Position numbers and translations under genes: made by a program. DNA of 64,000 nucleotides, from positions 186,001-250,000 of IMG/VR virus record IMGVR_UViG_3300032334_002567; one strand, 5' to 3'. Positions 37,108 through 61,115 of this stretch are shown here, piece by piece. Each line of letters starts with the position of its first letter. The stretch's first letter is position 1. The notes under the pieces were generated by a model that was not told the DNA's origin, ran no database searches, and saw only the letters and a program-made list of their open reading frames with translations.

Positions 37108-37595
37108 AACTAAAATTTACAGAGTGGCTAAAATTAGAAGAAATCGATACTCGTAATCTTAAAGATTACATGAAGACTAAGTTTGATCTAAACATAGACG
37201 AATTACCTCTTAACCCTATGGACTACGCTAGTAGAGCTGAAACGGAACCAGAGGGTCAAGGATTAGACACTCAAGCACCTTGGTACAGATACGGAAACTA
37301 TTGCGGACCAGGACCGGCATTAGCTAGTTCATGTAATAAACTTGCAACAGGAGATAAGCTTCCTCCTGCGAAGAACAGTGTTGACAGTCAATGTAAGAAT
37401 CATGATGTTGATTACTGTAAATGTGGAGTAGATTGGAAGGCTGGATTGCCGGGTGGTGGCACACCTTGTTCAAAAGAAGCCGATAAAGATTTTGTTTCAG
37501 GCCTTCAAAGATTAAGAAAAAAGATAAATCCAGAAGAAAGAAGGATAGCGGATATTATTAGGACTTATTTTACTTGGAAGAAAATATTCGGTTAG
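37104..37595 (+). CDS. Phospholipase A2-like protein with head-targeting-like leader
   Basis: YGNYCGPG Ca2+ loop; DSQCKNHDVDY catalytic His-Asp; downstream ADKDF. Confidence 0.8.
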   Translation: MKLKFTEWLKLEEIDTRNLKDYMKTKFDLNIDELPLNPMDYASRAETEPEGQGLDTQAPWYRYGNYCGPGPALASSCNKLATGDKLPPAKNSVDSQCKNHDVDYCKCGVDWKAGLPGGGTPCSKEADKDFVSGLQRLRKKINPEERRIADIIRTYFTWKKIFG

Positions 37596-39088
37596 TGATT
37601 TCTATTTTCTACTTGAGCTAGTTGTTGTCCAACAATTGGTGTTCTTGTTTGCTTTCTTAACATCTCAGGAACAAATGGTACATCGTACTTCTTAAGTACC
37701 TCTTTAAGGTTATTCGCATAAGGTGCTAAACTTGGACTTTGTAGGTCGTTATTTTTGATTGCCTTTATCACATTATCGATGTTCTGCTTGGTTGGCGGGA
37801 AGTTCAATTCTAAGTCGCCGGAATCTGTTTTCTTAATTAAGTGTTCATTGCTAAAACCTTCTGCGTTTCTAAAAAAGGAACCATCTTTATTTAAAAGCAA
37901 TACTTTATTATTATAGTAATAAGTTGCGGGGTCATGTTTAACCATAATTCCTTCATAAAGTTGAGACTGATTTCCATACCATTTTACCACAACTATTGTA
38001 TTGATTAGCTTGCTTAAAAAAGATTGAATTTTTCTTTTAAATTCCTTTTCTTTACGTATTTTCTTTAGTCCTATTACAGTGTCTCTTTGTGTTTGTAATA
38101 TGGACATCAAAGCTTCTTTTTTATAAGAACTCGGCAGTGTTTTTATTATTTCTCGGATGTAACTTCGGGTTAGATACAAATTAGGAGAAACCCTTAAAAA
38201 ATCAGCGGGTCTCAAATAATCTGTGTAGAATCTCTGATACATTAAGCTCATTGCAGGATCGGCTGCAGAGAAATTAAAGCCATTTACTTTTGACCCAGAT
38301 TTTTCTTCTTCTTGATTCATTTTCGCCACAGAAGCCAATAAATGATTGTATATTTCTAAAGCGGTTTTTGTGTCGTTATTTTTTGTAAGGCTGTAGCCGT
38401 TTGGTCCTTCAAAATATATTTCATAAACATTTTTTAATTGCTTGCCTTGAAAGTTTATGCTTGATGGTTCGATACCTACTTTGTATTCGTTGCCTTTTAT
38501 TTCAAACTTTGCTTCATAGCCTCCATGGCTGTCTGGTGGGTTTTCTTCTTCATGAGAAATTCTACGTTCTTCCTGTTCTGATTCGTGGTCACTCATTTTT
38601 TCTTGTACACAGGCGTCTATTGCTTCATCTCGGGCTTTTCTTATAGCTTCTTCCATTTCTTCTCTTCTTTCATCCATTTTATCTCGCCAATCTTGTAGAG
38701 CACTATCATATTCAGACTGAGCACTTTCTAGTTCTTCTTCCCAATTAGCAACTGCCTCTTCATGTTCCTCATCTGATGACGAGTCTTCTCTTTCTGGTTT
38801 GGGGTTTTCTTTTTCCCATTCCTCTCCATTTATGTGTTCAAAGTCTGGGTCTTCATCTGGCTCATCATATATGGGTTCGTCATAAACATCTTCATAACTA
38901 ATGTCATCACCCGCATCCATACAATCTTCATAAGCACTATCATGATCAAATTCTTCTCCTTCGAATTCTTCTGATTCACCAGGTCTTTTTTTTAGTTTGA
39001 TTTTGTCGAGTGGTAATTGAGAGGCACTACGCAAACCTTCCCAGAATATTTCGCCGTTATTACTTAGCCATTCACTGAAGTTGAACAT
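37592..39088 (-). CDS. Paralog-family protein with leader MFNFSEWL and a long acidic insert
   Basis: D/E-rich N-terminal third; shared FEGPNG...IYNHLLASV...GFNF...YL.P domain. Confidence 0.75.
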   Translation of the reverse strand: MFNFSEWLSNNGEIFWEGLRSASQLPLDKIKLKKRPGESEEFEGEEFDHDSAYEDCMDAGDDISYEDVYDEPIYDEPDEDPDFEHINGEEWEKENPKPEREDSSSDEEHEEAVANWEEELESAQSEYDSALQDWRDKMDERREEMEEAIRKARDEAIDACVQEKMSDHESEQEERRISHEEENPPDSHGGYEAKFEIKGNEYKVGIEPSSINFQGKQLKNVYEIYFEGPNGYSLTKNNDTKTALEIYNHLLASVAKMNQEEEKSGSKVNGFNFSAADPAMSLMYQRFYTDYLRPADFLRVSPNLYLTRSYIREIIKTLPSSYKKEALMSILQTQRDTVIGLKKIRKEKEFKRKIQSFLSKLINTIVVVKWYGNQSQLYEGIMVKHDPATYYYNNKVLLLNKDGSFFRNAEGFSNEHLIKKTDSGDLELNFPPTKQNIDNVIKAIKNNDLQSPSLAPYANNLKEVLKKYDVPFVPEMLRKQTRTPIVGQQLAQVENRNH

Positions 39089-39091
39089 AAT

Positions 39092-39403
39092 TTATTCCTC
39101 TACAAAAAAAGCTTTCTCCCACCAGTCATCGTTTATCTGTTGGAAGCCCGCAGCCAAATATTCAGCAGTTTTGTCTTTGCTAACAAATTTCGCATGACCT
39201 GCACCGTCATAAGCAAGGTACATTGAAGTATTTGGAATTCTTGCAATAAAATTGGATCCCTGATTCATTACCTTCCCAGATTGATTTATCGTGGGTGGAG
39301 ATTTCTCAAACTGCATATCAACTGCAGCTACAATTTGATCTTTAATTTTCACCGGATGCGGCAAAGTGAAGCTTGCCATTTCTATAAATTGTTTAAATTC
39401 CAT
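39092..39403 (-). CDS. Small protein with leader MEFKQFIE
   Basis: TATATA 4 nt before the ATG. Confidence 0.65.
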   Translation of the reverse strand: MEFKQFIEMASFTLPHPVKIKDQIVAAVDMQFEKSPPTINQSGKVMNQGSNFIARIPNTSMYLAYDGAGHAKFVSKDKTAEYLAAGFQQINDDWWEKAFFVEE

Positions 39404-39442
39404 AATTTATATATTAACAATAGAAAAAAAATGGGGGTATGA

Positions 39443-40176
39443 TTGTTTACTTTAGCATTATTGGCAATTTTTATCTTTATTTTAGCTATACTTATAGGCC
39501 CAATTGTTTTCTTGGTTCATAAGGTAGACTTTGTCCCAAACTACATAAAATTTACTATTTCTTTTGTTTCAATTTGTTGCTGTGCTTATATGATAGCGGT
39601 AGTGCCAGTTCCTATATTGCAACTATTCTTTTTAATTTCTATAGGCTTTATCTTAGCTGCAAGGGGCAAACCTCACATAAAATAGTGCAGATGTATTGCG
39701 TAAACCAAGCAAAGAAAAAAGTGCCCCATCATGCAAAGAACCAAGAATTTGCATGTATTTGCCATTGGGCTAGTGTACTCTAGTTGCTTTACTATTTGAT
39801 GTACACGAATCTTGTCAAGCTTATTTTGACATATTAAATAGTTGAGCTGAACATCTGTGCAATCACCACTAACGTATCTTTTTGCAAGGTTGTATTCTAT
39901 ATCTGTATTTTCCATTTTAGGCCTCAAAATATTGTAGTATTGAATGCCTAAATATATCAAAATGGAGGAAGAATGGAAATATTAACTAATTTTTGGCTTT
40001 GGCTAGCTGTATTCATTGTTTCCGGTGGCTACATTCTTTATATCAAAAAGAAAGAAAGAGAAAACGTACAGGCACAGTTTGTTATTACCGGTACGTTGCT
40101 TATTGTGTTTTATGCGGTATGCTTTTGTTCAGGAATATGCACTATTTTAAATTTTATTCGCAACTGGTTTTTTTAA
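39443..40176. CDS. Three small membrane-protein ORFs (39443-39685 +, 39673-39960 -, 39973-40176 +)
   Basis: Hydrophobic segments. Confidence 0.5.
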
Positions 40177-40184
40177 GGTAAAAT

Positions 40185-41420
40185 ATGAATTTTAAACAAT
40201 GGCTCCTTACAGAAGAGCGTCAATCAATGGGTGCATCTATCCCCATGCCAGATGAAGTACAAATTCTATCCAATCTGTTTAGTAGTTTTGGAGCTAAATT
40301 GTATGCTGTTGGTGGAGCTATAAGAGACTACTTATACCATATATTCCACGATAGACATATTCCTTACAACCCCAAAGACGTAGATTTAACCACAGATCAA
40401 CCACCAGATCAAGTTACAAGAATACTTAGCTCTCCAGCAGCAGTTCAGCATGGGATTAGGGTCTTACCTAAGGGAGAAAGCTTTGGAGTTATCAGTGCTA
40501 TTATAAATGGCAAAGAATTTGAGATCGCAACCTTCCGAACAGAAGTCTATGATGCTGCCACGGGTGATGGCAGAAGACCAGATAGTGTTCAATACAGTAC
40601 AGCCGCTGAAGACGCCAAGCGTAGAGACCTTCACATAAACGCATTGTTCTATGATCTTCATAGCAAAGAAATACATGATTACAATGTAGATGAGAATGGA
40701 GAGGGAGAAGGATTTAAGGACATTAGGAACAAAAAAGTTAGAGTTGTAGGAGATCCTTTTGAGAGATTTAGAGAAGATAAGCTTAGAGTTTTAAGGCTTG
40801 TCAGATTCTTTTGTAGGTTTAATGAGGACGTGATAACCAGTCACTTAGATTCAAGAACATTATCTGCCGTAGATAACTTCAAGGATTTGAAGGGAGTTAG
40901 TGGCGAAAGAATAGCAAATGAATTTATTTCTGGACTTAAGACTTGTAAGAGTACAAAAAACTACATTTTAAGCTTCAAGTCTTTGGGGTTGATACCAACA
41001 ATATTTCCCGGCTTAAATGTTAATACTTCTGAAATGGATGCTATGGACTCTTCAAGAAACTCAATAGCAGTCACTGCTTTTTTACTCAGAGACAATGATA
41101 TAAAAGTTATTAAATCTAAGCTAAATTCACTCAAGTACTCTAACGAATTTATAAACACACTTTCTTTGGTGCTCATGGCAGCTTACAAATTAGATAAGTC
41201 TAATTTTATTCGTTTGTTAAGAATGAGAGATAATCTAAATGATAGCTTAAAAAGTTCGCTTGTTGAATTCGGTAAAATAAGTGGTCTGGAAAGAGAAATG
41301 AGTCATTTTGTACATTACACTCAAGTCACAAAATCAGAAGACTATATGCATCTACAGAATGAAAAAAGAGGAGAGAAGATGAGTGAAGATGAATACGAAA
41401 ATTATAAGGAAAATTCATGA
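40185..41420 (+). CDS. cca: Class II tRNA nucleotidyltransferase (CCA-adding enzyme) with leader MNFKQWLLTEE
   Basis: VGGAIRD, DVD, EIATFR.E, RRDLHINAL, FREDKLRVLR; poly(A) polymerase GRRF signature absent. Confidence 0.88.
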   Translation: MNFKQWLLTEERQSMGASIPMPDEVQILSNLFSSFGAKLYAVGGAIRDYLYHIFHDRHIPYNPKDVDLTTDQPPDQVTRILSSPAAVQHGIRVLPKGESFGVISAIINGKEFEIATFRTEVYDAATGDGRRPDSVQYSTAAEDAKRRDLHINALFYDLHSKEIHDYNVDENGEGEGFKDIRNKKVRVVGDPFERFREDKLRVLRLVRFFCRFNEDVITSHLDSRTLSAVDNFKDLKGVSGERIANEFISGLKTCKSTKNYILSFKSLGLIPTIFPGLNVNTSEMDAMDSSRNSIAVTAFLLRDNDIKVIKSKLNSLKYSNEFINTLSLVLMAAYKLDKSNFIRLLRMRDNLNDSLKSSLVEFGKISGLEREMSHFVHYTQVTKSEDYMHLQNEKRGEKMSEDEYENYKENS

Positions 41421-41908
41421 ACTCTTTCATTTCTTGGCTAGAAAATAGAGATAGAAAAGAACTCATACTAATGAGAGGTGTTTCATCATCGGGTAAAAGC
41501 ACTGTAGCTAAAAGTTTGGTTGGCGGTGGAAAGATATTCTCTACAGATGACTTTTTCATGCAGGGAAATAGGTATGTTTTTGACCCAAAAAATATTGGTA
41601 CAAACCACAAACTAAACCAGAGCAGAACAGAAGAAGCTATGAAACAGGGTATTAGTCCAATTATAATAGATAATACTAATACTGAGTCTTGGGAGATGAA
41701 ACCTTACGTTTTATTGGCCGATAATTATGGATACTCAATAAAAATAGTAGAACTACCACCTTTAGACATAGAAGAGTTGATGAGACGACAAGAGAGTAGA
41801 AGATCTTTTAATAAGGCTTTGCCTAGAAAGTCCTTGGAGCGGGCGATAGAGCGCTATCAACACAATGTAAGTGTAGACGATATTCGAAATAGTTCGCCTC
41901 CTTTTTAA
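41417..41908 (+). CDS. AAA_33/N4BP2-like P-loop polynucleotide kinase with leader MNSFISWLE
   Basis: RGVSSSGKST, STDDFF, IIDNTN, WEMKPYV; ATGA-coupled to cca. Confidence 0.82.
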   Translation: MNSFISWLENRDRKELILMRGVSSSGKSTVAKSLVGGGKIFSTDDFFMQGNRYVFDPKNIGTNHKLNQSRTEEAMKQGISPIIIDNTNTESWEMKPYVLLADNYGYSIKIVELPPLDIEELMRRQESRRSFNKALPRKSLERAIERYQHNVSVDDIRNSSPPF

Positions 41909-41910
41909 TT

Positions 41911-42498
41911 ATGTGTTTATTTGATGCCTTAATCCTTTTATATTGTTCTCCAATTATACTGCTTTATTTTTTGATGTGCTCAACCATACCTTTCATCAGG
42001 GTAGGAGAAATAAAGAAGGGTAAGGGTGTAGATTTGTTTATTTGCCGGGATATAATCCACTCAGACTTTATTTTTAAATCTAGTCTTTGGAGTGAAGTTT
42101 TTGAGCCAAAAGGCGAATACATTAAAATCGGTTGGGGAGACAGAAAAATATTCTTAGAAACAAAGGTTTGGGCTAATCTAAGAGCCTTTGATGTAATGAC
42201 AGCATTTGTCGGTATCAATAAAACAGTTTTAAGAGTAGAGTTTTTGGACACAGTGCCAGAAGGCTGTGTCAAAATGGAAATAGATGACTGCCAACTAGAA
42301 GTGATTAAAATCCACGTTAACCAATCTTTTAGTGGTAAACCTATAAAGAAGCAAAGTTGGCACTGTGAACGTGGAGACTTTTACGAGTCTAAGTTGAGAT
42401 ACAATTGTATAACAAATTGCAATAACTGGGTTAATCGTGCTCTCTTCGTATGCAGAGCAACCAATAGAGTTTGGTGTCCACTAAGTTTATACTTTTAG
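41911..42498 (+). CDS. DUF2459-like protein
   Basis: IHSD, IGWGDR, TNCNNW. Confidence 0.7.
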   Translation: MCLFDALILLYCSPIILLYFLMCSTIPFIRVGEIKKGKGVDLFICRDIIHSDFIFKSSLWSEVFEPKGEYIKIGWGDRKIFLETKVWANLRAFDVMTAFVGINKTVLRVEFLDTVPEGCVKMEIDDCQLEVIKIHVNQSFSGKPIKKQSWHCERGDFYESKLRYNCITNCNNWVNRALFVCRATNRVWCPLSLYF

Positions 42499-42692
42499 TG
42501 CTTTTTCTTTTTGTGATTTTTCTTTTTATGTTTTTTCTTGAGGCTGTTGCGACTAGCCTTTACATAAACTTGATCCGACCCAGTTTGATTCGCTAGTGGA
42601 GGATGAGTTCCTATACCGCCATATTGGGGTGGGTAAATTCCAACTATTCCTTCTCCAAGTCTGCTTTTTAGAAATTCAAAAAATGTTTTCAT
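42495..42692 (-). CDS. Small basic protein with leader MKTFFEFL
   Basis: LGE after the leader; K/H-rich tail. Confidence 0.65.
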   Translation of the reverse strand: MKTFFEFLKSRLGEGIVGIYPPQYGGIGTHPPLANQTGSDQVYVKASRNSLKKKHKKKNHKKKKH

Positions 42693-43000
42693 TGGTTAAA
42701 TACGTTCTTTCCTGTTGAAGCTTGCATTTTGCTTGTTTCTTCTACTAGCTGTTCAAATAAAGCTAACATTCTGGGATTTCTTGCAACATACCTTAGTAAA
42801 GGAACATATGTGTTTGACTTCTCTCCAATTTTATTTGAAATTCTATTTAGAACTCTTGCAAATGCATTTTTGTCCTCGTGCCCGGTATTTAGCTCGTTAT
42901 CATCAGGGTTAGCAGCGGCCTGTGTTTGTCTATTAGTCATTTGAGGGTTTGCTACAATCGGTTGTGCATTCATATTTTGAACTAATTCATAGAAATTCAT
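42689..43000 (-). CDS. Hypothetical protein starting MNFYELV
   Basis: AAGGA RBS; TATATA at 43027. Confidence 0.6.
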   Translation of the reverse strand: MNFYELVQNMNAQPIVANPQMTNRQTQAAANPDDNELNTGHEDKNAFARVLNRISNKIGEKSNTYVPLLRYVARNPRMLALFEQLVEETSKMQASTGKNVFNQ

Positions 43001-43132
43001 TTTATTCCTTTTCTGTGTGGACAAACTATATATGCTTAAGGGAAAAAATCAAAATGACAGACTTAATGATATTAAATTATTTGGCCTTTTTTGCGTTTGT
43101 TTTAGTTCTATTAACTTGGATACATTTCAACA

Positions 43133-43567
43133 ATGATTAAATTTAGTGTATGGTTAGAAAACAAGATTAAAGCTATTCGAACAGCTAGTGATGCTGAGTT
43201 GGACCAAGTTGTCAAGGGAGCACCTTACACTTCTCCTATGTTAAGAAGAATTAACTATTTAACAAATAATGGGAAACCGTTCGATCCTTCTAGTCCGGTA
43301 AATGATTACTTTCAACATTATGTTGGCGTTAACAAAACAAGATCTAGAAAAGCAAATAAAGATAGAGCCTGGGCTTTAGGGCTGGAAGTGCCAGAAGAAG
43401 ATAGAGAAATAATTCGGGTCGGGGGCATTGAAAAACCCAGCAGTGCGGTTCCTTATCTTAAACCAGATCACATAAAAACAATTACTAGGCTGGGTGCAGG
43501 AAAGCAAAAGCCCAGAGATGCACAAAGATTTGTAGGTACTTACAAAAGATTATTTGGCGAAAGATGA
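43133..43567 (+). CDS. Hypothetical protein with leader MIKFSVWLE
   Basis: Coupled to the next gene. Confidence 0.65.
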   Translation: MIKFSVWLENKIKAIRTASDAELDQVVKGAPYTSPMLRRINYLTNNGKPFDPSSPVNDYFQHYVGVNKTRSRKANKDRAWALGLEVPEEDREIIRVGGIEKPSSAVPYLKPDHIKTITRLGAGKQKPRDAQRFVGTYKRLFGER

Positions 43568-44280
43568 AAACATTCAAACAATACCTAGAAGATCGTCAAA
43601 TAATGATTTTTTCTACTAGACCGGTAGAGTTATATCATGGTTCAAACACTGGAGCCGATAATAGTGCTTTAAATAGCTTGTTAAAAGATGGCATTAAACC
43701 AACAGTAGCTCAAGGACATGGCCAAGGATCAGGTTTTTATGTATGGTCAGATAAAAACAGTGCCATCAACCACACTAAAGCCATAACCTCAGGCTCTATT
43801 ACAACTAATGCTAAGACAGACGGTCTTCCAATGATAGTAACAGTCGAAGCCATAGCAGACCCAGAAAAATGGGATTTAGATTATGAATCTAATAAACGAT
43901 CAATCGTTAATTGGCTACATGATAATTTTGAAAAACTTCAACCGCTATTGAAACCAGAAGACAAAGTTCAACTAAGGTCTAAACAGAATAGAGAAATCGT
44001 AAACAATAGAGATGAAAAAATAATGTCAAAGGGTGTAAGTGTTTCTTTAGAGACTTACAAAACACTATATGCTCAGAGTGAACCTAATATTCGGGACGGA
44101 GAGGTTATAGCACCAATTATAAATAAGCTACAACAAAAAGACCCTCAAACTGTACATAAATTCGAAGAACTATTTTTTGCCAACATGAAGCCAGGGGTTG
44201 CAATAAAGTATGTTGGCAGTGAAATATTAAGACCCAAAAGAATAGAGATATTTAAAGATGGTCAATGGGTTCAAGCTTAA
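43564..44280 (+). CDS. ADP-ribosyltransferase-like (H-Y clade) protein with leader MKTFKQYLE
   Basis: LYHGS...SLLKDGI...GSGFYV...A pattern of PARP/diphtheria-toxin-type ARTs. Confidence 0.6.
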   Translation: MKTFKQYLEDRQIMIFSTRPVELYHGSNTGADNSALNSLLKDGIKPTVAQGHGQGSGFYVWSDKNSAINHTKAITSGSITTNAKTDGLPMIVTVEAIADPEKWDLDYESNKRSIVNWLHDNFEKLQPLLKPEDKVQLRSKQNREIVNNRDEKIMSKGVSVSLETYKTLYAQSEPNIRDGEVIAPIINKLQQKDPQTVHKFEELFFANMKPGVAIKYVGSEILRPKRIEIFKDGQWVQA

Positions 44281-44636
44281 TTAGGGAATCTATTTCTGAT
44301 GTGGTCAACGTCTTTCATTATATCAGTGTTACACCTAGTCCAGTTTTTAAGGTGCCCGAAAAATAGATGACAATTAAAGCTTTCGCTTTCACAAAGAGAA
44401 ATTAGATTTTCTGGGTCAAGTTCTCTGTCAGGATCTAGATGAACTGGGACTATATGATGTGGCACAACATTCTTGTCGCTTCCGCATATCGCACATCTTG
44501 GATTATTTTCTAGATGTGCAAGTCTAACTTTTCTCCATTTTGAAGATCTTGGATATGCTAGAACCTGCACCTCATCTACAGAAAGGCTCTGTATCTGATC
44601 CCGAAAACAAAATAATTTTTTTAAGAACTCTATCAA
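44277..44636 (-). CDS. HNH endonuclease
   Basis: CAICG...PHHIVP...NLISLC...CH. Confidence 0.85.
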   Translation of the reverse strand: MIEFLKKLFCFRDQIQSLSVDEVQVLAYPRSSKWRKVRLAHLENNPRCAICGSDKNVVPHHIVPVHLDPDRELDPENLISLCESESFNCHLFFGHLKNWTRCNTDIMKDVDHIRNRFPN

Positions 44637-44648
44637 ATGAAACTTTCC

Positions 44649-45032
44649 TTATTCTGGTTTTGAAGAGTAGTGATTTCCACTTCTTGTCATTCTTGACCAT
44701 GAAGAGAAATCAGAAGATCTTAGCTTGCTACCTTTTTCAGCTAATCCAATAGCTTTACTAACTGCTTCTTTTATTTTGGATTCTTCTTTTAATCCATATT
44801 CTAAAGTTCTTTTAATTTCAAGAAAGACTTTTAGCAACTCACTATTTAATTCTACAAAGTTTGCTATTCTTTCGTCTTTTTCATCTATCATGTCTGCGAT
44901 TTGACGCAAATGATGTGTATGAGAAACCTCTGATTTGAGTGTGCCCGCTGGAGGAGTGCGTGGAAGGCCAATATCCCCGGTCGGCGGTACATTTTCGGAT
45001 GATGATTCTAAAAATTGCTCAAAACTTTTCAT
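44649..45032 (-). CDS. Hypothetical protein with leader MKSFEQFLE
   Basis: AGGAG RBS; TATATA at 45058. Confidence 0.7.
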   Translation of the reverse strand: MKSFEQFLESSSENVPPTGDIGLPRTPPAGTLKSEVSHTHHLRQIADMIDEKDERIANFVELNSELLKVFLEIKRTLEYGLKEESKIKEAVSKAIGLAEKGSKLRSSDFSSWSRMTRSGNHYSSKPE

Positions 45033-45126
45033 ATTTGTCTCCTGTAGAATTCACTTTTATATATCAAAACTTGACAAAAAAAGCAAATTAGGCTATCATT
45101 CACTGATCTTGCCAAGGAAATATCAC

Positions 45127-45585
45127 ATGAAAGAAAATTTGTGTAAATCTCTGAAGATTCTCCCCACAGACTACGAAGATTACGGGGGTGAGGTAAAGAG
45201 ATGGAAAGATCCAAATTTAAATTACCCAGATTGCTCTTCTGGATGTAAGTTTTTTGCTGAACTAAAAGGTTCTTTAGGCCTTGATTGGGGCGTTTGCTCA
45301 AATCCAAACGGCCCCAGAAAAGGAATGTTGACTTGGGAGCATCAAGCTGGTTTTGGATGTTTTGAACGTGAGCCGTCTTGTGAAGTAAAAGATGTAGTTC
45401 AAGAAGTCATAGATCATTTAAATAAGACCACAAAACTCCCAGAAGGTTGTGATTTAAGTGATCTTGGAAATGAAATCGGACTTGTAATCGGCAAATATGT
45501 CACAAGCAAAAACATTGGTTTCGAACTAGAAAGTTTCTTGTCGGGCGTTAAACACGGTGTTAGCTTAGTTGATGGGACACATTAA
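45127..45585 (+). CDS. DUF3027-like Cys-rich protein
   Basis: DCSSGCKFF...DWGVCSNP...LTWEH; TTGACA-N17-TATCAT at 45071. Confidence 0.6.
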   Translation: MKENLCKSLKILPTDYEDYGGEVKRWKDPNLNYPDCSSGCKFFAELKGSLGLDWGVCSNPNGPRKGMLTWEHQAGFGCFEREPSCEVKDVVQEVIDHLNKTTKLPEGCDLSDLGNEIGLVIGKYVTSKNIGFELESFLSGVKHGVSLVDGTH

Positions 45586-46197
45586 ATGGGCAAAGTTACA
45601 TTAATTGGCGACTTGCACGGCAAATATAAAAGATATCACGAAATAATTCGTGAGAAGGATCGCTTTCCATACACCGTACAGTTGGGCGATTTTGGTTTTG
45701 ATTATGAAACTCTTAAAAACGTTGATTCAAAAAATCATGTTTTCGTTGGAGGTAACCACGACAACTACGAAAAGGTTAAAACCGTCCCCAATTATCTTGG
45801 TGATTTCGGACACATGGTCAACTTTAACGGTTTAGACTTTTTCTATTATCGTGGAGCTTACAGTATCGACAGACAGTATCGCACTATAGGAATTGATTGG
45901 TGGGCAGAAGAACAAGTGAGCGTTGAAGGCTTTATGGAAGCTAGAGAACTTTATCGTGGGATAAAGCCTAGAATTATGCTTACTCATGATTGCCCCGAAA
46001 AAATAGCATATCTGATGTTGGAGCCCGGATGTAGAATATACCAAAATATGACGGGCTGGGCGTTACAAGAATTGCTCAATATTCACGAGCCAGAATACTG
46101 GATTTTTGGTCACTACCATCAATCTAAAACTATTAAGCATGGTAACACCACATTTATTTGCCTTGATGAACTAGAAACTTATGATATAATTGCATAA
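45586..46197 (+). CDS. Calcineurin-like metallophosphoesterase
   Basis: GDLHG, LGDFG, GNHD, THDCP, FGHYH. Confidence 0.92.
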   Translation: MGKVTLIGDLHGKYKRYHEIIREKDRFPYTVQLGDFGFDYETLKNVDSKNHVFVGGNHDNYEKVKTVPNYLGDFGHMVNFNGLDFFYYRGAYSIDRQYRTIGIDWWAEEQVSVEGFMEARELYRGIKPRIMLTHDCPEKIAYLMLEPGCRIYQNMTGWALQELLNIHEPEYWIFGHYHQSKTIKHGNTTFICLDELETYDIIA

Positions 46198-52199: not shown

Positions 52200-52201
52200 C
52201 A

Positions 52202-52960
52202 ATGTTAAGAAGCCGAATTAATTATTGGGGTTGTTCTAAATTTGCCGATTGGATTCGGGGCGAAAAGAAACCATTCGCTCTTGAATGGGGCAAGTGGGAA
52301 GAGTGGAAAGAAGAGCAAAGCAGAAAGAGACCAATTCGTTTTTGGATATCAGATACTCTGTTGAATAAAATCCAAAATTTTATCTTTTATCCTTCTGATG
52401 TTTGGAATGAAATTAGACACTACTATTACAACAGGTTTGTTTCTAAAACTCATTATCTCAAAACAGGATTGAAACCCGGAAGATACCATGAACTAGATGA
52501 AAGAATAATTCATGGATTGTTCAACGAGTTAGTTGATTTCGTGGAATGCGAACAAGCATGGATGAACCACATCTGTAGTGAAAACAAAAACTTTAAGTTC
52601 AAAAAAGGCAGATGCCCAGAAGCAGGAATAGATTATCTTAATTGGGCCATTTCACTTAAAAATGACGAAGATAGTGGTTTTGAAAAGGGAGATAAAGATT
52701 ATGGCACACCAAGTCGCCAATCCATAGCAGCACAGAAAATTCTTGATATTTATAATTGGTGGAAGTTTGAACGCCCTAACAGAAAAGACCCTATGGAAGT
52801 CAGTGGTTGGAGTGATTATTATGACAACAAAGGCAACTACACAAAAAAACAACAATCAGCAATTCTAAAAAAGCTTGATAAGGTTGAAGTATCATACAAT
52901 CAAGAAGACGAAGACATGATGATAGAGCTAATAAAGATTCGCAGCAGTTTGTGGACTTAA
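52202..52960 (+). CDS. Conserved phage hypothetical protein
   Basis: LFNELVDFVE...YNWW...RP...LIKIRSSLWT. Confidence 0.7.
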   Translation: MLRSRINYWGCSKFADWIRGEKKPFALEWGKWEEWKEEQSRKRPIRFWISDTLLNKIQNFIFYPSDVWNEIRHYYYNRFVSKTHYLKTGLKPGRYHELDERIIHGLFNELVDFVECEQAWMNHICSENKNFKFKKGRCPEAGIDYLNWAISLKNDEDSGFEKGDKDYGTPSRQSIAAQKILDIYNWWKFERPNRKDPMEVSGWSDYYDNKGNYTKKQQSAILKKLDKVEVSYNQEDEDMMIELIKIRSSLWT

Positions 52961-54123
52961 ACTAAACTTTCTTCAATAAGCTCTGGACACTCTAATCCCG
53001 TCCATATATCTTTATTTCCTTCGACTCTGCTTCTCATTAGTTTAATTCTTTCTCTGCGAATCTTCTCCATCAAATCTCCAGAAGAAGCAACATTTTTACT
53101 AATTATTTCTTGCTCTCTTTTTCTCAATCCATTGATCTTTTTAACTTCAATGCTTGAAATCTTTATTTTTAACCTAACTAAATTCGATATAACTCTTCGG
53201 TTGTTTACAGGAAACTTTGCATTAGCCTTGTTCCAAAGTATCATTAGATCGTTCGGTGTCTTGCCAGCCCAGTTGCTCAAAAGAAAACTCTTGAATCTTT
53301 CCTGAACATCCATTGGCAATCCGACTATTTTTAATTTTTTTGCGAGACCAAGTCTGCAAAGTTTCTTTTGAATTGCATTTAAAGTATAGGGCAATATCTT
53401 TAAGTTAAAAACTACACGAGCAGATTTGCCTTGATTGTGTAAATCATGCAATAAGTTAATATGCTCAATAGGCCATTCTGGGCGACTTGGTTTTGTCTCA
53501 ACCAATCCCAATCGAATCATCTTGCTCTTAATTGCACTTTTGGATCTATTTGAGCGAACTTTACCACACTTTAAATTTTCTATTTCTTCATTTGACCAAA
53601 CTTTCGTTCTCTTTAATCCCATCCTATAAAGTTTTAGTTTAACGCTTTCTTTACTACGGCCGGGAACTTGAGGAATAATACCATCCGCATCAGAATAGTT
53701 TTTTAAGATTTCTAACTCTGACTTTTTCCATTTTCTGCCCTTCAGCAGGCCAAGTGAAGCCATTTTTAATCTAACTGCATAGTCAGTTCTACCCGCTATT
53801 TGTGGTATTTTTCCTTGGCTGTTTCGGATGATGGCTACTTCTTCATCCGTCCAATATTGGCTTTTGATTAGCTTTAAACGATACATTCTTCTTTTAATAG
53901 AAGCTTGGCTTTTTCCCTTTATTTCTGGGATTATTCCTTTAGACGCTGCCTCTTTAAGAATTTCAATTTCTTTATTGTTCCAAACTCTTGAGTTAAGCAA
54001 CCCAAGACGTAGCATTTTATTTCTTACATATCTTCTTTCTCGTCCTTTAATATTCGGGACAATATCTTTAGAGCTGGCTCTTTCGAGGATTTTTATTTCC
54101 TCTACAGTCCATTTCGCCACCAT
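52957..54123 (-). CDS. Tandem Myb/SANT-like repeat protein
   Basis: About six W[TNSK]xxExxIL...GR[ST]...K...LGL units; GGAGG RBS; TTGCAA-N16-TATACT at 54193-54166. Confidence 0.72.
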   Translation of the reverse strand: MVAKWTVEEIKILERASSKDIVPNIKGRERRYVRNKMLRLGLLNSRVWNNKEIEILKEAASKGIIPEIKGKSQASIKRRMYRLKLIKSQYWTDEEVAIIRNSQGKIPQIAGRTDYAVRLKMASLGLLKGRKWKKSELEILKNYSDADGIIPQVPGRSKESVKLKLYRMGLKRTKVWSNEEIENLKCGKVRSNRSKSAIKSKMIRLGLVETKPSRPEWPIEHINLLHDLHNQGKSARVVFNLKILPYTLNAIQKKLCRLGLAKKLKIVGLPMDVQERFKSFLLSNWAGKTPNDLMILWNKANAKFPVNNRRVISNLVRLKIKISSIEVKKINGLRKREQEIISKNVASSGDLMEKIRRERIKLMRSRVEGNKDIWTGLECPELIEESLV

Positions 54124-54274
54124 AAAACACCTCCATGCTCTTAGCGTCTACAAGTTGGAATGATTAGTATAGCAAACTAATTCTTTTTTGCAACTAATAA
54201 TATAACAAATTTTAGATTAGAATGTCTTGACTAAAGATCAATTTTTCATTATATTTGTCACCAAAGGAAAAAAT

Positions 54275-54631
54275 ATGCCAAGCAACAGATACGACTCAAT
54301 AAAATACTACATTGAACCAAACGCAAAAGAAATACTTCACCCAGAAGAAGTTGATAAACTTGTTAAGTTTATGGTGGATGAAATTTTTGATCGCAACTGG
54401 AACGGTCAAGGAACACTTGTAAGCAGATGTTTTACAGATGATGATCAAGTAATTTATGTCTTAGCAATGGAAGCAAAAGGCAAAGGTTTTGATTATGTCA
54501 TTCTTCTTACTAGAAAAGACCTACAATATAGCCACAACGGCCACAGCCCAGAATTATCTAAGCTTCTAGACGACTATGATGAAAAACATTCTAAAAATCA
54601 GGTCGCAACAAAAAAATTAAGCGACTTGTGA
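54275..54631 (+). CDS. Hypothetical protein
   Basis: AAGGA RBS before MPSNRYD. Confidence 0.6.
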   Translation: MPSNRYDSIKYYIEPNAKEILHPEEVDKLVKFMVDEIFDRNWNGQGTLVSRCFTDDDQVIYVLAMEAKGKGFDYVILLTRKDLQYSHNGHSPELSKLLDDYDEKHSKNQVATKKLSDL

Positions 54632-54632
54632 A

Positions 54633-55289
54633 TCATCTGGAAGGAAAAACAAACTCTTCTTTTAATACTATGACGCCGGGAGGCAGATCCCAGAAATCCC
54701 ATAGGTTTGAATGTATGTCTTTAGTTTGAAACATTAGTTCGTGCGTCTTCATATTATCTGAAGTTCGTTGAACTATCTTTTGGATTTTTTCTCTAGCTAT
54801 CCCAGAATTTAATTGATCCGTTATATACAGCCTCATTGCTGCTTGTTCTATGCGTTTATTTCTCCAACACAGATATCCACAAAAATATGGTTCTTCACAC
54901 CACTCACAGTAATTGTTTTTTTTAAGCTTTAAAATATATTTTTCGCCAACATCTAGTTCAGTTTTAATTGAGCACATATCATTCTTAGACGAATATAATA
55001 TTTCAAATCCTTTTGGGAATCTATCTTCTTTATTTAAGAACCAAATAGAAGGGATGTTGCCTTCTTCATCTGTTACGCAAAAATATTCTGATAATATTTC
55101 TCCACATCTTAATGCTATTTCTGTGTCATTGTGATTTAAGTTTGCCCTTAAAGCTGGTACCGCTTTAAACCCAAGCTTTTTAAGTTCCCCAGAAGCAATT
55201 TCTCTTTCTTTATACTCTTCTTTACCAAGATCATTAATTAATTGATCTAGATTAATTTGGCAAAACAACAAAATTAAGAGCATTAACAT
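54633..55289 (-). CDS. Secreted protein with HEAT-like helical domain
   Basis: LINDLGKEEYKEREIASGELKKLG.KAVPALR. Confidence 0.6.
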   Translation of the reverse strand: MLMLLILLFCQINLDQLINDLGKEEYKEREIASGELKKLGFKAVPALRANLNHNDTEIALRCGEILSEYFCVTDEEGNIPSIWFLNKEDRFPKGFEILYSSKNDMCSIKTELDVGEKYILKLKKNNYCEWCEEPYFCGYLCWRNKRIEQAAMRLYITDQLNSGIAREKIQKIVQRTSDNMKTHELMFQTKDIHSNLWDFWDLPPGVIVLKEEFVFPSR

Positions 55290-55337
55290 TGTAATTTATA
55301 TACTATCATAATATATCTAAATTAACAGGGGAAATAA

Positions 55338-56762
55338 ATGCCATATAGACGTTATTCAATATTAAAAGGACCAGCAGAAGACAATAAAACATTAATACAA
55401 AATATTGCTAGCCCCAAGACTTCTGGGCCTTATTTGCCTATGGAACTAGCTACTATTTATAATTTTCCATCTGGCTTCAATGGCTCGGGTCAAAAAGTAG
55501 CATTTATTGAATTAGGCGGTGGATTTGTACAGTCTGATTTAGATGCCTTTTTTGCTTCTTTTGGAATAACCGCACCTACTGTTCAATTTGTTTCTGTAAA
55601 CGGTGCACAGAACCTTCCAACAAATGCAAATTCTGATGACGTAGAAGTAATGTTAGATTTAGCTGTTACTATTGGAGTCGCTCCCGGTATAACTCCAATT
55701 GTTTATATGGCTCCTAATTCGATTCAAGGGTTTGTAGGAGCTATAAATAGAGCTGTAACAGACGCAGTAAACATTATAAGTATATCGTGGGGAGCACCAG
55801 AGCCCTATTGGAATAATACTGAATTAGCTATGATGAATGCAGCTTTTCAAGCTGCTGTTAATGCTGGGATATCTGTCTTTACTGCCTCCGGAGACGCAGG
55901 AGCTAGCGATGGTTTAAGTGGCTTGAATGTTGATTTTCCAGGCAGTTCTCCTTTTGTGACTAGTTGTGGTGGTACAACTTTAAATGCTAGTCAAAATACT
56001 TACTTATCAGAAACTGTTTGGAATAATTCTACTTATTCTTCAACAGGTGGTGGATTGAGTGCGAAATTTGGACTCCCCACATATCAGATTAATGCGGGAG
56101 TAAAGAATAATACAGGAGCAAATTCGGTAAGAAGAGGCGTTCCAGACGTTGCAGGAAATGCAGACCCAGATACTGGCATAATAGTTCCTGTTGATGGTGC
56201 CAATTACATTGTAGGCGGCACAAGTGCTGTGGCTCCTTTATGGGCAGGGCTCACGGCCGTTCTTAATCAAGGTTTGGGTAGGAATTTAGGTTTCTTGAAT
56301 CCAATAATATATCCTTTATTTTTAGATCATCGAGGCGACCCTGCTACACCGCTTCACGATATTACCTTAGGCAACAACAATGGCTATACAGCTAAATCTG
56401 GCTGGGACGCTTGCACCGGTTGTGGAAGTCCCAATGCACAAGTTCTTTATAATCTACTTTCTTCTTCACCTACTCCAACCCCCACCCCCACAGCAACACC
56501 AACTCCCACTCCAACAAGAACAAGAACTCCTACCCCCACTCCAACAAGAACAAGAACTCCTACCCCAACTCCAACAAGAACAAGAACTCCTACCCCAACT
56601 CCAACAAGAACCCCAATTCCAACAAGAACACCAACCCCTACACCAACTAGAACAAGAACACCGACGCCAACTCCAAGGTCTACAAGAACTCCAACACCCA
56701 CCCCAAGGGTCATGAGAACACCAGCTCCAAGAATACTCAAGAAAAAAAGAGATTCAAAATGA
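55338..56762 (+). CDS. Peptidase S53 (sedolisin/kumamolisin-like) with Pro/Thr/Arg tail
   Basis: [44 protein letters not shown]. Confidence 0.93.
56468..56730 (+). repeat. Coding tandem repeats (30-bp [10 protein letters not shown] units)
   Basis: ACTCCAACAAGAACAAGAACTCCTACCCC[CA] repeated from 56508. Confidence 0.9.
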
Positions 56763-57412
56763 AAAAATATATCGCTATTTTATCGCTGTTACTAATTATT
56801 ATTATTGGATATTTCTGCATAGAAAATCACGAATCATATAGCAAAGAAGAAATTACTTTCACTATAGACAAACCCTATTTATCAACAGTAAAGGGTCTAG
56901 CAACAAAGAACTCTTTAGAGAAAATGGTAGAAGAAAATGATGGTATGCTTGTTTACAAGAACTGGGAGAATTTTGATATTGAAGTGCCCCAAAGAATATT
57001 GAGAATAAAAGAATATAAAGTACATGGCAAACTCAGATTTACGGTAGAAAAAACAGATCATGATCTTGGACAAATTAAATTACCATTTATACAAGAAATA
57101 CATTTAGACAACCACATCTTTGACATAAGCACTAAACTAGTTTCACCACAAAAACACGTACCATCCTACAACAAGACCATACAAATAAGTCCGCTCTTTG
57201 AAGACAACAATAAGATCGCTCAAAAAACTCATGTAAAAATAAGCAGTGAACTTAAGATAAAGAAATTAATACCAATATTTTTCAAAAAATTTATGGACGA
57301 TAAGGTAGAGCAAACCAACCAAAAAGATATAGACCAACTCAAGAACAATATATTAAATATATCTAATCAAAAAAGTATATTAACTTTTAAGCTACAACCT
57401 CAAGGGATTTAG
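56759..57412 (+). CDS. Membrane-anchored hypothetical protein
   Basis: N-terminal hydrophobic helix; ATGA-coupled to the peptidase. Confidence 0.65.
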
Positions 57413-58481
57413 AAGGCTCGTTTTGTAGCCATGTAGAAAAAGGCCCAGAAGGCTTATAGGTTTTAAGTACCTCTTCAAAGTTACGACTATAAGCCGCTGC
57501 ATTTGTGGGATGAGAGATACCCCTCATAGTAGCCATTCCTGATGGAAGAGGTATCGAAACTCCTGTTGCTTTTATATTTTCTATTGCATGTAATACTTCA
57601 TCTATTTGGCTCTTGGTAGGAGCCGCAGTGAGCTTAAATTTAGGAAACTCACCTTTAATTGAGGTATTTCTTATTATATCATTATGGTGTACATCTATCA
57701 TGTTCAGTTTTTTATCTTTTAAAACAAACATCTTAACAAAATTGGTAAAAGACAGTGGCGGTCCAACTGCAACTATAAAACCTACAACTTGTTTCATACT
57801 ATTTGACGCATGATCTACGCCATTAAAAGCAACAATTCTATTTACCATTTTATTTAAAAATGCCGTTGCTGCTCTATCGACCATTTTTTCTTTTCTTGCA
57901 TCATTTATTCCTTTATCTGCTTCTTTATTGTTGTCTGCTATTTGCCCCAAAACATTTTTCTTATCTGGACCACTCAACCCAGACATAAGTTGTCTAATGT
58001 ACGGTTTCTTTAAGTACAGCTGTGAATTCACCCTGAGATAACCAGCAGGTTTTAGATAATCTTTGTAAAATTTTCTATACATTAGAGCCATCTTAGACTC
58101 GGCCGGGGTGAAGACAAATCCTTGTACATTTTTTTCGACATCTACCATTTTTACTACCGATGCCAGCACATGGTCATAAACGCTTTTTGCAACGCCGGGA
58201 TTATTTTTATTTGCTGTAAGGAATCCAGTTGGACCATGAAAACTTATGTCATAAACTTTTTCTAAGATTTTTCCAATGAATTTTTTATTTTGTAAAGATT
58301 TTATGTCTACGGTGTAATCGTCTTCGCCTATCTTAAACTTGCTAACATAGTTTGCTTGACCTCTGTTGTCAAAAAAACTCGTCAAATTAACTTTATCCAA
58401 TGGTAGAATGCTTGTATCTCTTGCAACTTCCAGATAGTCACAAAGAATCTCTTCAAACTCGAACCAATTTCTAAATTCCAT
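57387..58481 (-). CDS. Paralog-family protein with leader MEFRNWFEFEE
   Basis: FHGPTGF...VYDHVLASV...GFVF...ESKMALMY.KFYKDYLKP. Confidence 0.75.
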   Translation of the reverse strand: MEFRNWFEFEEILCDYLEVARDTSILPLDKVNLTSFFDNRGQANYVSKFKIGEDDYTVDIKSLQNKKFIGKILEKVYDISFHGPTGFLTANKNNPGVAKSVYDHVLASVVKMVDVEKNVQGFVFTPAESKMALMYRKFYKDYLKPAGYLRVNSQLYLKKPYIRQLMSGLSGPDKKNVLGQIADNNKEADKGINDARKEKMVDRAATAFLNKMVNRIVAFNGVDHASNSMKQVVGFIVAVGPPLSFTNFVKMFVLKDKKLNMIDVHHNDIIRNTSIKGEFPKFKLTAAPTKSQIDEVLHAIENIKATGVSIPLPSGMATMRGISHPTNAAAYSRNFEEVLKTYKPSGPFSTWLQNEPSKSLEVVA

Positions 58482-58551
58482 GCTTTTCCTAATATTTTCT
58501 ATTATTTTGTAATATTTTATATACACTTTCTCTTATACATTTAGGTGTAAT

Positions 58552-59868
58552 ATGGAACATATATTTCAAAAAGAACAATTTGGCGAAGATTGGTTCACCT
58601 CTCCTGATCTTTATTCCCGTATGGTTAAAAAAGCAATAAATGGGAGCATATTTGTTGAGGTGGGTTCTTGGAAAGGCAAATCTTCTTCCTATATGGCCAC
58701 AGAAATAATTAACTCAAATAAGGACATACAGTTCTTTTGTGTTGATACTTGGGAAGGCAGTATAGAACATGAAGGAATGGAATTAGATAATCTTTATGAA
58801 ACTTTTTTAAATAACATGAAACCTTTAGAGTCTTATTATTTTCCTTTAAAAGTCACATCAATAGAAGCAAGTAAAAAGTTTAAGGACAATTCCTTAGATT
58901 TTGTATTTTTAGATGCTTCTCACGAATATGAAGATGTTAAAGCGGATATCTTGGCGTGGCTACCCAAAGTAAAACCGGGCGGAGTTCTCGCTGGTCATGA
59001 TTATTACCAAGAAACTGATTACTTTCCGGGTGTAAGTAAAGCAGTAGATGAAGTTTTAAACAACTTTGAAATTGTTGATAATTGTTTTGTGTTTTACAAA
59101 GACAAGCTAAGAAACTTCCCATCAGTTAATTTTATAAGCATAGAAGAAAGCCAACACAGAAGAGATTTATTAAAAAAGAAGTTCAATTCTTATGGTATCA
59201 AAAATACAACAGGATATGTTTTTGAAAGATATAAAGAAGGTGATTGCAACCTATTTGGAGAAATGATTATTGATCTAAAAACAGAAAGTAAAGGACCGGT
59301 AACATCTCACTTAAAAGCAATCAAAGATTGGTATAATAATACGAACGAACCTTATGCATTTTTCTGTGAAGATGATTTAAGCCTAGAAACAGTTAAATAT
59401 TGGAACTTTACTTGGGAAGAATTCTTTGCTCGACTCCCCAAAGATTGGGGTTGTGTTCAACTTGCTTGGATACGTGATGAGTTTTTCAAGTTCGGATACA
59501 AACTAAGAAACAGATGCTGGTGTGATTGGTCTGGGTGTGCCTACCTATTAAGCAGAGAACACGCTAAGAAGCTAATAGAATCATACCACTATGACGATAA
59601 CTTTTACCTAGACTTCAAAGGATCAGACACAGATGCAAGAGAAGATTGGGCTAAAGTACCAGTTATAGAAACAGTAATCTTTTCCCCAGTTACAAAGGTG
59701 TACTCTTTTCCAATGTTCGTTGAAGACGTAATTCTTTGTAACTCTACTTACCAAGAAGGCCAAGGAGATATGCACTTTGGCTCACATCACAACACAATAG
59801 AATTTTGGAAGAATATAGGTAAATATGCTTCTTTAAATGAACTTGTTGATCATTCTATTTTGCACTAG
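58552..59868 (+). CDS. SAM methyltransferase (Methyltransf_24-like) fused to a GT25-like domain
   Basis: VEVGSWKGKS, FVFLDASH, GGVLAGHDY; then SHLKAI, FCEDD. Confidence 0.82.
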   Translation: MEHIFQKEQFGEDWFTSPDLYSRMVKKAINGSIFVEVGSWKGKSSSYMATEIINSNKDIQFFCVDTWEGSIEHEGMELDNLYETFLNNMKPLESYYFPLKVTSIEASKKFKDNSLDFVFLDASHEYEDVKADILAWLPKVKPGGVLAGHDYYQETDYFPGVSKAVDEVLNNFEIVDNCFVFYKDKLRNFPSVNFISIEESQHRRDLLKKKFNSYGIKNTTGYVFERYKEGDCNLFGEMIIDLKTESKGPVTSHLKAIKDWYNNTNEPYAFFCEDDLSLETVKYWNFTWEEFFARLPKDWGCVQLAWIRDEFFKFGYKLRNRCWCDWSGCAYLLSREHAKKLIESYHYDDNFYLDFKGSDTDAREDWAKVPVIETVIFSPVTKVYSFPMFVEDVILCNSTYQEGQGDMHFGSHHNTIEFWKNIGKYASLNELVDHSILH

Positions 59869-60037
59869 CAGCTATCGTTTCTTTCAACTTTTGATTCTCA
59901 GTCTTTAAGAACTTAATCTGATTTTCCATGTCGGTAATCGCACGAATAATCCTATAAACCTGATTGCTCTTTTCTTGCTCATAGGTATTGGTAGCAAGAC
60001 GCTTTAATTCATTCATATCATCTAAAGAAATAGGCAT
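59855..60037 (-). CDS. Small coiled-coil protein
   Basis: AGGAGG RBS. Confidence 0.6.
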   Translation of the reverse strand: MPISLDDMNELKRLATNTYEQEKSNQVYRIIRAITDMENQIKFLKTENQKLKETIAASAK

Positions 60038-60056
60038 AAATCCTCCTGTATTACCA

Positions 60057-61115
60057 TTAAGATAGTACAGCTGGAACAGAACTGGGAAAAGATAATTTGT
60101 ATCTATCGAGAATTTTTTGTAAAAAAATAGCTGTTTGGTTAGGACTTCCTTCCCAAGAATCTATGGACTTCTTGATAGAAGCCAAAATAGGTTCTATTTC
60201 GCTCTTTGTTGCAGGAGGCAATAGTTCGAAACGGCCATTGTCTGCAGACTGGAAAAAATCCTTATAAGGAATGGAATAATCCCATCCAGTACCATTCTGT
60301 ACTATTATTACTTTAGCTAATCCATCTGAAGTATGAAGTTCTTTTAAAATTCCAATTGATCGTGGTCGGTTTGCCCAACCATCAGTTCCATGAGAAGCAA
60401 AAGGAACTATGTGACCTATCATGCGTTTCAAAGTAGGTTCTGCTTGTCTGTTCAAAGCTTTTAAATTTCTTATTTTTTTAAGCCCTTCTTTTTCTGATCT
60501 TAAATTATCTCTTATTTGTTTCGCTACTTTAGGCTTTTCTTCTGCTTTTAAAAGTTCACGGAGATAATTTTTTCTAACAATGAACCCTCCCGAACCTTTT
60601 ATGAATCCATTTGGTCTCAAGTACTCTTTATAGAACTTGTCATAAATTAAAGCCATTTTGCTTTCTTGAGGACGAAAAACAAAACCATTTACCTCTCTAC
60701 CTTCTTCTTTTTCTCTTTTCATCATCTTCCATATAGAAGCTAATAAGTGGTCATAAACTTGCCTAGCCGTTGCAGCATTATTTCCTCCAGTAGTCTGGAA
60801 ACCTTTAGGCCCATGAAACGCAACACTAAAAAGATTGTTAATATCAATCCAACGTTCCACAGAAACACCGTCAGTTTTTGTTACCGGCAATTGATCATTT
60901 GTTCTTTCCATTTCTACTTTATAAGGAACTCTGTCAACCTTAAAGGTCGAATAATAATTATCTGGTGGATCAATATTAGAGATATCGTCCTCATATTCAT
61001 CATCGTAATTATCGCTATCAGGAGCAAAGCCTATTCCAAGCTTAACGCTTCCTGTAGGCAATAGGTTTGGGTCTCTAGCCTCTATTGTTATCAACCACTC
61101 TTTAAAACTTATCAT
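60057..61115 (-). CDS. Paralog-family protein with leader MISFKEWL
   Basis: FHGPKGF...VYDHLLASI...GFVF...ESKMALIY.KFYKEYLRP; TATATA 4 nt before the ATG. Confidence 0.75.
   Translation of the reverse strand: MISFKEWLITIEARDPNLLPTGSVKLGIGFAPDSDNYDDEYEDDISNIDPPDNYYSTFKVDRVPYKVEMERTNDQLPVTKTDGVSVERWIDINNLFSVAFHGPKGFQTTGGNNAATARQVYDHLLASIWKMMKREKEEGREVNGFVFRPQESKMALIYDKFYKEYLRPNGFIKGSGGFIVRKNYLRELLKAEEKPKVAKQIRDNLRSEKEGLKKIRNLKALNRQAEPTLKRMIGHIVPFASHGTDGWANRPRSIGILKELHTSDGLAKVIIVQNGTGWDYSIPYKDFFQSADNGRFELLPPATKSEIEPILASIKKSIDSWEGSPNQTAIFLQKILDRYKLSFPSSVPAVLS

Follow-up and report, generated by a model that had tools for sequence, protein, structure and literature searches.

A fast-diversifying, multi-copy protein family with a GNAT-like core and a T4-like N-terminal leader in a huge T4-related phage genome

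In this study, we examined a family of paralogous proteins encoded in IMG/VR virus record IMGVR_UViG_3300032334_002567, a linear record of 381,443 bp with an estimated completeness of 79%, from which the 64,000-nucleotide stretch at bases 186001-250000 (hereafter the window) was analysed. Three minus-strand genes of the window, P0001, P0002 and P0003, encode proteins that align over their whole length at 31-33% identity. They represent an accessory protein family of huge T4-related phages that is multi-copy and diversifies fast, is widespread in the uncultured ones and is unannotated. The copies identified in this genome by searches of its open reading frames (ORFs), including searches with a family hidden Markov model (HMM), are listed below, with protein lengths in amino acids (aa).

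Window 60057..61115, minus strand: P0003, 352 aa, the reference member modelled with AlphaFold2.
Window 57387..58481, minus strand: P0002, 364 aa, HMM E 2e-67, read from the ATG at codon 16 of a GTG-started, 379-aa ORF at 57387-58526.
Window 37592..39088, minus strand: P0001, 498 aa, HMM E 3e-73.
Genome 32725-33600, plus strand: an extra full copy outside the window, found by six-frame search and HMM.
Genome 334827-335873, minus strand: an extra full copy outside the window, found by six-frame search and HMM.
Window 20495..21019, plus strand: a distant copy with leader and core domain (~175 aa), forming the N-terminus of a 760-aa ORF at 20495-22777.

When the protein encoded at 57387 was compared with the six-frame translated genome, the other two window paralogs were recovered at E 2.3e-38 and 1.0e-34, and the same search exposed the copies at genome 32.7 kb and 335 kb; iterated HMM searches of all ORFs converged on five full members. 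These values bear out the initial annotation, which had described three paralogous window ORFs with a shared motif, and the motif itself needs little correction. All three ORFs share F, GP, G, N, A, Y, H, LAS, K, E, V, GF, F, M, L, Y, FY, YL and P without exception, while its T and its K...E...V spacing are not literal in all of them (small indels). The start of the ORF at 57387 is most likely the ATG 15 codons in, at window 58481, which we prefer because it restores the shared N-terminus; with this correction all five members begin M-x-F-[KRS]-[EN]-[WF]-[LF]. The distant resemblance suspected at the N-terminus of the ORF at 20495 is missed by a HMMER family search and emerges from profile-profile comparison. 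Aligned with the family profile by hhalign, the single 20495 sequence matches over its first 169 residues in the same motif order (probability 84%, E 7e-6), and a 7-homolog profile of it matches over 137 columns (probability 95.3%, E 2.1e-8). A candidate seventh copy at genome 340477-341964 (HMM E 0.007) gained no support from hhalign. The genome-wide count thus stands at five full members and one distant one in the 381-kb record, making the proposed expansion larger than the three copies plus a fourth originally stated.

Beyond this genome, a word-index protein search returned two close relatives only, and an exhaustive profile search of metagenomes returned 256 cluster representatives at E<=1e-3 and 172 at E<=1e-10. 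Nearly every metagenomic match opens with this leader and continues as D-[IV]-x-x-x-D-T-S-x-[IV]-x-L, and the portion conserved across the family consists of leader, core and long helix, with variable C-termini. One member of 601 aa lies on a 90-kb fragment of another huge phage, and a 50-kb phage contig carries four members within 9 kb, three of them in tandem; given the multi-copy state of both this genome and that contig, expansion is a recurrent property of the family. A locus search with a 7-sequence alignment found one other phage contig and a shorter contig with an identical copy of P0003 that matches part of this genome. No match was obtained by tblastn of two members against 50,697 phage records or by megablast of the region. 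The large terminase encoded in the record is of the gp17 (T4) type; among phages it is most similar to that of LR756511, an uncultured phage of 595 kb (49% identity), and T4-like phages of Microcystis, Flavobacterium, Rhizobium and cyanobacteria come next. LR756511, the closest relative by terminase, lacks the family, as do T4 and Microcystis phage Mel-JY01.

An AlphaFold2 model of P0003, built with a 117-sequence alignment (predicted local distance difference test, pLDDT, 86.5; predicted template modelling score, pTM, 0.79), divides the protein into four parts.

Window 61080..61115, minus strand: leader, residues 1-12, with helix 4-12 and the pattern M-x-x-F-K-E-W-L-...-E, which ends in a conserved Glu.
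Window 60561..61058, minus strand: GNAT-like/DUF6934-like core, residues 20-185.
Window 60423..60545, minus strand: long single helix, residues 191-231 (DSSP of the model), with conserved K219 and R223.
Window 60213..60410, minus strand: small SH3/Tudor/Sm-like beta-barrel, residues 236-301, followed by two helices to residue 341.

The order of elements in the modelled core is strand, variable acidic loop, three long strands, helix, strand, helix and two strands. From the N-terminus, the model places helix 4-12, strand 25-28, a low-confidence acidic loop, strands 53-60, 63-79 and 86-102, helix 114-137, strand 144-147, helix 152-169, two short strands, helix 191-231, a five-strand barrel (236-298) and two helices. 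The helix and beta-rich C-terminal region first read from the sequence correspond to helix 191-231 and strands 236-283, and the SH3/Tudor-like barrel is present in many, not all, members. Among the 117 sequences, Tyr121 (helix 3) and Tyr158 (helix 152-169) are invariant, and F4, E12, F58, F100, G102, F147 and F161 are conserved in at least 91%; conservation is about 90% for P103 and T109, about 84% for K219/R223 and about 80% for K129/K130. This pattern fits a GNAT-type ligand cleft, but mostly marks the hydrophobic core. In P0001, the loop between leader strand and core holds an extremely acidic, low-complexity insertion of ~170 residues (about 35-200), and the protein has a net charge of -36; the other copies are short in this loop, and similar acidic loops occur in many metagenomic members. 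The insertion could serve as a DNA mimic or histone-like binder.

The GNAT-like topology proposed in the initial annotation holds at the level of fold. The core of the P0003 model has the mixed sheet, the strand4-helix3-strand5-helix4-strand6 order and the V-shaped opening by which the GNAT fold is recognised, and Foldseek searches of the PDB gave weak matches only, with GNATs in the lead (alpha-TAT1, TacT, AtaT, KacT and GmvT); GNATs also dominate the structural matches as a whole, which include AcrVA5 and Mom. At the level of sequence, a Pfam scan of the 117 members revealed no acetyltransferase family, and the family profile had no match among PDB sequences. Where GNATs have their pyrophosphate loop, the family has a different conserved loop, G102-P103-x-G105...T109 followed by G/A-x-x-A, and the invariant Tyr158 lies in the helix where many GNATs have their catalytic Tyr, a comparison of helix position and not of side-chain orientation. 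Enzymatic activity is possible.

The domain had also been described as unrecognised, which is close to the mark: direct Pfam and PHROG scans of the three window proteins and the 117 members yielded nothing usable. Intermediates link the domain, at the limit of detection, to DUF6934 (PF22028), itself without known function. The direct comparison is negative: PF22028, whose gathering cut-off is 27 bits, finds none of the window proteins even at E<=10 and nothing in the six-frame translated genome. The indirect evidence is structural in part. In the ESM Atlas the core lies beside viral DUF6934 clusters, with template modelling (TM) scores of 0.75-0.76 over about 130 residues; DUF6934 is also nearest by language-model features (0.92, 195 shared), and Foldseek against BFVD matches small phage proteins and the N-terminal parts of large ones at E 6e-5 to 1e-3. 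The family HMM further reaches Flavobacterium phage immuto gp41 (E 1.5e-5) and Rhizobium phage RHph_I1_18 gp179 (E 8e-5), proteins of 141-147 aa. PF22028 scores immuto gp41 at 25.2 bits, under its cut-off, and AUZ95242 of phage Atu_ph07 at 28.1 bits, over it, and hhalign aligns the family profile with AUZ95242 at E 2e-4 (probability 47%). Because the fold matches and the intermediates immuto gp41 and AUZ95242 bridge both families, we regard the domain as a divergent branch of DUF6934; the two are distantly related, by a homology that is transitive and at the limit of detection. Two Atu_ph07 proteins carry relatives of the domain.

Atu_ph07 350504-351388: AUZ95242, an internal tandem duplication of a DUF6934-like domain, each repeat of which starts ..[ST]ELFDT.., like T4 Alt (MELITELFDED).
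Atu_ph07 349666-350502: AUZ95241, with a Cys/His peptidase-like N-terminal part (by eye) and a C-terminal copy of the domain.

Other phages encode structural relatives of the core joined to a deaminase domain and, as judged by eye, to a domain like a Cys/His peptidase. The ..TELFD.. start, together with weak BFVD Foldseek matches to Alt-like ADP-ribosyltransferases (phiAS5 Alt, E 1.5e-2), raised the idea of homology to the N-terminal region of T4 Alt (first 200 residues), which we rejected on an hhalign probability of <1% against T4 Alt and a 9-phage Alt alignment.

Preceding the core in all full members is the leader, whose consensus M-x-F-[KR]-[ED]-[WFY]-[LFI] resembles, as a short motif, the M-K-T-[YF]-x-E-F-I type of the T4 internal proteins (AF158101), of which IPII and IPIII begin MKTYQEFIAE and IPI begins MKTFKEF. 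Among the 117 members F4 and E12 are each 99% conserved, and position 10, which is P3 to the Glu, is L in 44, F in 23, I in 15 and Y in 9 of the 99 occupied positions. From its sequence, the hydrophobic-x-Glu at the leader end resembles the gp21 cleavage-site pattern (L/I-x-E) and would be a putative site; in T4 Alt, six N-terminal residues are removed, after I-T-E. T-even internal proteins are diverse, with only the capsid-targeting sequence in common (PMC3012670).

The leader extends well beyond the family. In the form M-x(1-2)-F-x-x-[WFY]-[LIFMV]...E it heads about 36 of the 552 ORFs of this genome, which are otherwise unrelated, and internal occurrences number 17-20 in 185,000 residues. 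Leader ORFs in the window start at 20495, 34523, 36946, 39092 (minus strand), 40185, 41417, 42495 (minus strand), 43133, 43564 and 44649 (minus strand), with about 25 more genome-wide; nine are clustered at window 39-45 kb. A 215-kb sample of LR756511 contains 23 leader ORFs, or 10.7 per 100 kb, the same density as here, and T4 has about four, one being the early protein gp61.1. Leader genes also differ from other genes upstream of their starts: TAAATA occurs within 20 nt in 22% of leader genes vs 5% of others, and GGAG is rarer (8% vs 22%). The TAAATA-like box, which we take to recall the T4 late promoter, sits 3-10 nt before the ATG (for example at window 61116-61140 and 39404-39430). Such boxes may be late-type promoters giving very short or leaderless mRNAs.

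Taken together, these features lead us to favour, tentatively, a leader-directed, head-delivered effector role, with a cytoplasmic accessory role close behind. In such a scheme, the leader would act like a T4 capsid-targeting sequence and bring the protein into the assembling prohead, where a gp21-type prohead protease would cut after the invariant Glu of the hydrophobic-x-Glu. The mature protein would then ride in the head and enter the cell with the DNA. There, the GNAT-like cleft, putatively lined by Tyr121, Tyr158, the Gly-Pro-x-Gly...Thr loop and Lys129/Lys130, may bind either a host macromolecule or a cofactor resembling acyl-CoA, and target binding may be extended by the barrel, such that the protein would blunt host defence or take over a host function early in infection. 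The expansion of copies and the 20-35% identity between them would reflect an arms race with host targets.

Several observations weigh against delivery in the head. Neither a gp21-type protease (PF03420) nor a gp23 capsid protein (PF07068) was found in the 381-kb record, which is 79% complete; the capsid-like signal amounts to one 130-aa partial gp23-like stretch, 30% identical to the gp23-type protein of LR756511, within a 587-aa ORF outside the window (genome 28923-30686, plus strand) that has a Pro/Thr/Asp-rich N-terminus. Since gp21 and gp23 are undetectable in the record, a prohead protease for this phage is taken solely from its relative LR756511, whose genome has genes for a gp21-type protease (E 7e-28) and the capsid protein gp23 (E 5e-87). 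Enzymes bear the leader too, namely a CCA-adding enzyme (window 40185) and an AAA_33 kinase (window 41417), odd cargo for a capsid, and the family proteins are of 290-500 aa and neutral to acidic, in contrast to the small, basic internal proteins of T4.

Other observations weigh against head delivery and at the same time support the view that these are cytoplasmic early or middle proteins of host takeover or anti-defence, never packaged, in which the helix is the first DUF6934-type element or a generic interaction helix and the likeness to T4 is convergent. In 4 of the 4 contigs examined, the family genes are surrounded by genes for nucleotide metabolism, tRNAs, methyltransferases and glycosyltransferases and lie outside structural modules. 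AUZ95242, with its tandem domains, has the leader-like helix again within the chain, and AlphaFold packs the helix and the strand after it onto the core (pLDDT 72-93), which together suggest that the leader is part of the fold; the minimal relatives of 141-147 aa in ordinary-sized phages likewise retain the helix. Virion mass spectrometry of Atu_ph07, a permissive proteome, lists no protein numbered 409-442, the range in which its two DUF6934-like relatives fall (numbering inferred from accession order). Finally, T4 gene 61.1 (18966-19130) encodes a 54-aa early hypothetical protein that begins MKTFKEFIKE, and the leader motif is thus not exclusive to known head proteins. Yet a cytoplasmic role leaves unexplained why the same motif heads about 36 unrelated ORFs here and 23 in 215 kb of LR756511 while being rare internally, and why a Glu with a hydrophobic P3 is 99% conserved. 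We consider this role possible, if somewhat less probable than delivery in the head. The suggestion in the initial annotation that these are internal head proteins therefore keeps the T4-like leader and the T4-type terminase on its side, and loses ground to the missing gp21 and gp23, the non-structural context and the relatives not found in the Atu_ph07 virion proteome; as an identity it is plausible but unproven.

A less likely explanation is that the proteins, packaged or not, are active GNAT-type acyltransferases that modify a host protein or tRNA, like AtaT/TacT and AcrVA5, or phage DNA, like Mom. This is consistent with the dominance of GNATs among the structural matches, with a conserved glycine-rich loop with a Thr where GNATs bind pyrophosphate, and with an invariant Tyr within an M-x-L-x-Y-x-[KR]-F segment, which recalls GNAT motif B. 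Family genes also adjoin DNA methyltransferase or glycosyltransferase genes three times. The canonical motif A and any sequence-level relationship to GNATs are, as set out at the end, lacking. That the proteins are instead structural virion components (scaffold, decoration or inner-body) is highly improbable: the T4-like leader with its putative protease site, a long helix typical of scaffolding proteins and the multiple paralogs, a state in which giant-phage inner-body proteins also occur, are outweighed by scattered, non-structural, minority-strand loci, high divergence and variable C-termini, absence of the family from LR756511 (the closest relative having head genes) and the position of minimal 145-aa relatives among early-type genes in ordinary T4-like phages.

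The surroundings of the family genes offer further observations. GC content is ~35%, and no alternative genetic code is needed to read the proteins. None of the contigs appears human, and no broken toxin gene is involved. No RNA run was found to contain the region. The window holds mostly plus-strand enzyme genes, including phosphoribosyl pyrophosphate (PRPP) synthase, helicase, AAA ATPase, CCA-adding enzyme, AAA_33 kinase, methyltransferase/glycosyltransferase and subtilase. A fusion gene of Methyltransf_24 and glucosyltransferase (window 58552-59868, plus strand) lies between P0002, from which it diverges across a 25-bp gap, and P0003, with which it converges. In another phage, a D12-class DNA methyltransferase is convergent to a family member, and a 296-aa ORF convergent to the copy at genome 32.7 kb is, by eye, DNA methyltransferase-like too; there may be a recurring link of the family to DNA modification. 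Directly downstream of P0001 lie a gene for a CAP/SCP-domain protein (window 36432-36911, minus strand, E 5e-18) and a convergent ORF (37104-37595, plus strand) in which a domain like parvovirus-type phospholipase A2 is matched at E 2e-5, just over the cut-off. Either is an unusual find in a phage. In the same operon as the 335-kb paralog and downstream of it, genome 333886-334830 (minus strand) encodes a protein of 314 aa that has a signal peptide and, as judged by eye, a His...Cys pair like that of caspases. A tRNA-Gly(TCC) gene (window 61246-61319, plus strand) lies on the opposite strand 130 bp upstream of P0003, and a tRNA-Met(CAT) gene lies at window 7850-7923 (minus strand). Near the 3' end of the record is a baseplate wedge gene, and a single ORF of 4,404 aa (genome 348024-361238, plus strand, outside the window) lies just upstream of baseplate/tail genes.

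If the leader is a working targeting signal, sequence alone would suffice to predict, by a motif of 12 residues, which proteins uncultured huge phages inject. The T4 internal-protein system would then be seen to extend to dozens of cargoes, among them enzymes; the family would be a large class of injected effectors, so far unstudied, whose fold is acetyltransferase-like; and DUF6934, a widespread phage domain, would have its first functional lead. The boldest form of this idea is doubtful: huge T4-related phages might put a T4-type capsid-targeting leader on dozens of proteins, such as the GNAT-like family, the CCA-adding enzyme and the kinase, and so inject a large enzymatic 'ejectome', in which the family would be the most diversified cargo and an acyltransferase-like counter-defence effector. 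Should the leader be only a structural helix, the outcome is more modest: a domain architecture that is new and well defined, in a family whose many copies and fast evolution are typical of genes in phage-host arms races.

Altogether, the family can be set beside four known systems. With the GNAT acetyltransferases (RimI-type, AtaT/TacT/KacT, alpha-TAT1, AcrVA5 and Mom) it has no sequence-level relationship; the canonical motif A (Q/R-x-x-G-x-G/A) is absent and the N-terminal arm is rearranged. The head-packaged effectors or polyvalent proteins of myoviruses described by Iyer, Aravind and co-workers likewise embody the concept of enzymes and binding modules that travel with the DNA, occur as fusions or paralogs, and diversify (PMC9503650); they are recognised by MuF/portal fusion or head-gene adjacency, neither of which is seen for this family. 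DUF6934 (PF22028), which is mostly viral, has the same core fold, and both families open with a leader-like helix, whereas DUF6934 proteins are single domains of about 140-170 aa and the present family has, in addition, an acidic loop, a helix of 40 residues and a beta-barrel; because DUF6934 is without known function, this link names a fold and not a role. With T4 IPI, IPII, IPIII and Alt, the family is alike in a leader of the M-K-T-[FY]-x-E-F-[IT] type followed by a Glu cleavage site, putative in the family, while their mature parts show no homology, and the N-terminus of T4 Alt (..TELFD..) resembles the repeat starts of AUZ95242. Like the T4 internal proteins, moreover, the proteins that bear this leader share the leader only, the family is multi-copy and fast-evolving, and the phage that hosts it has a T4-type terminase.

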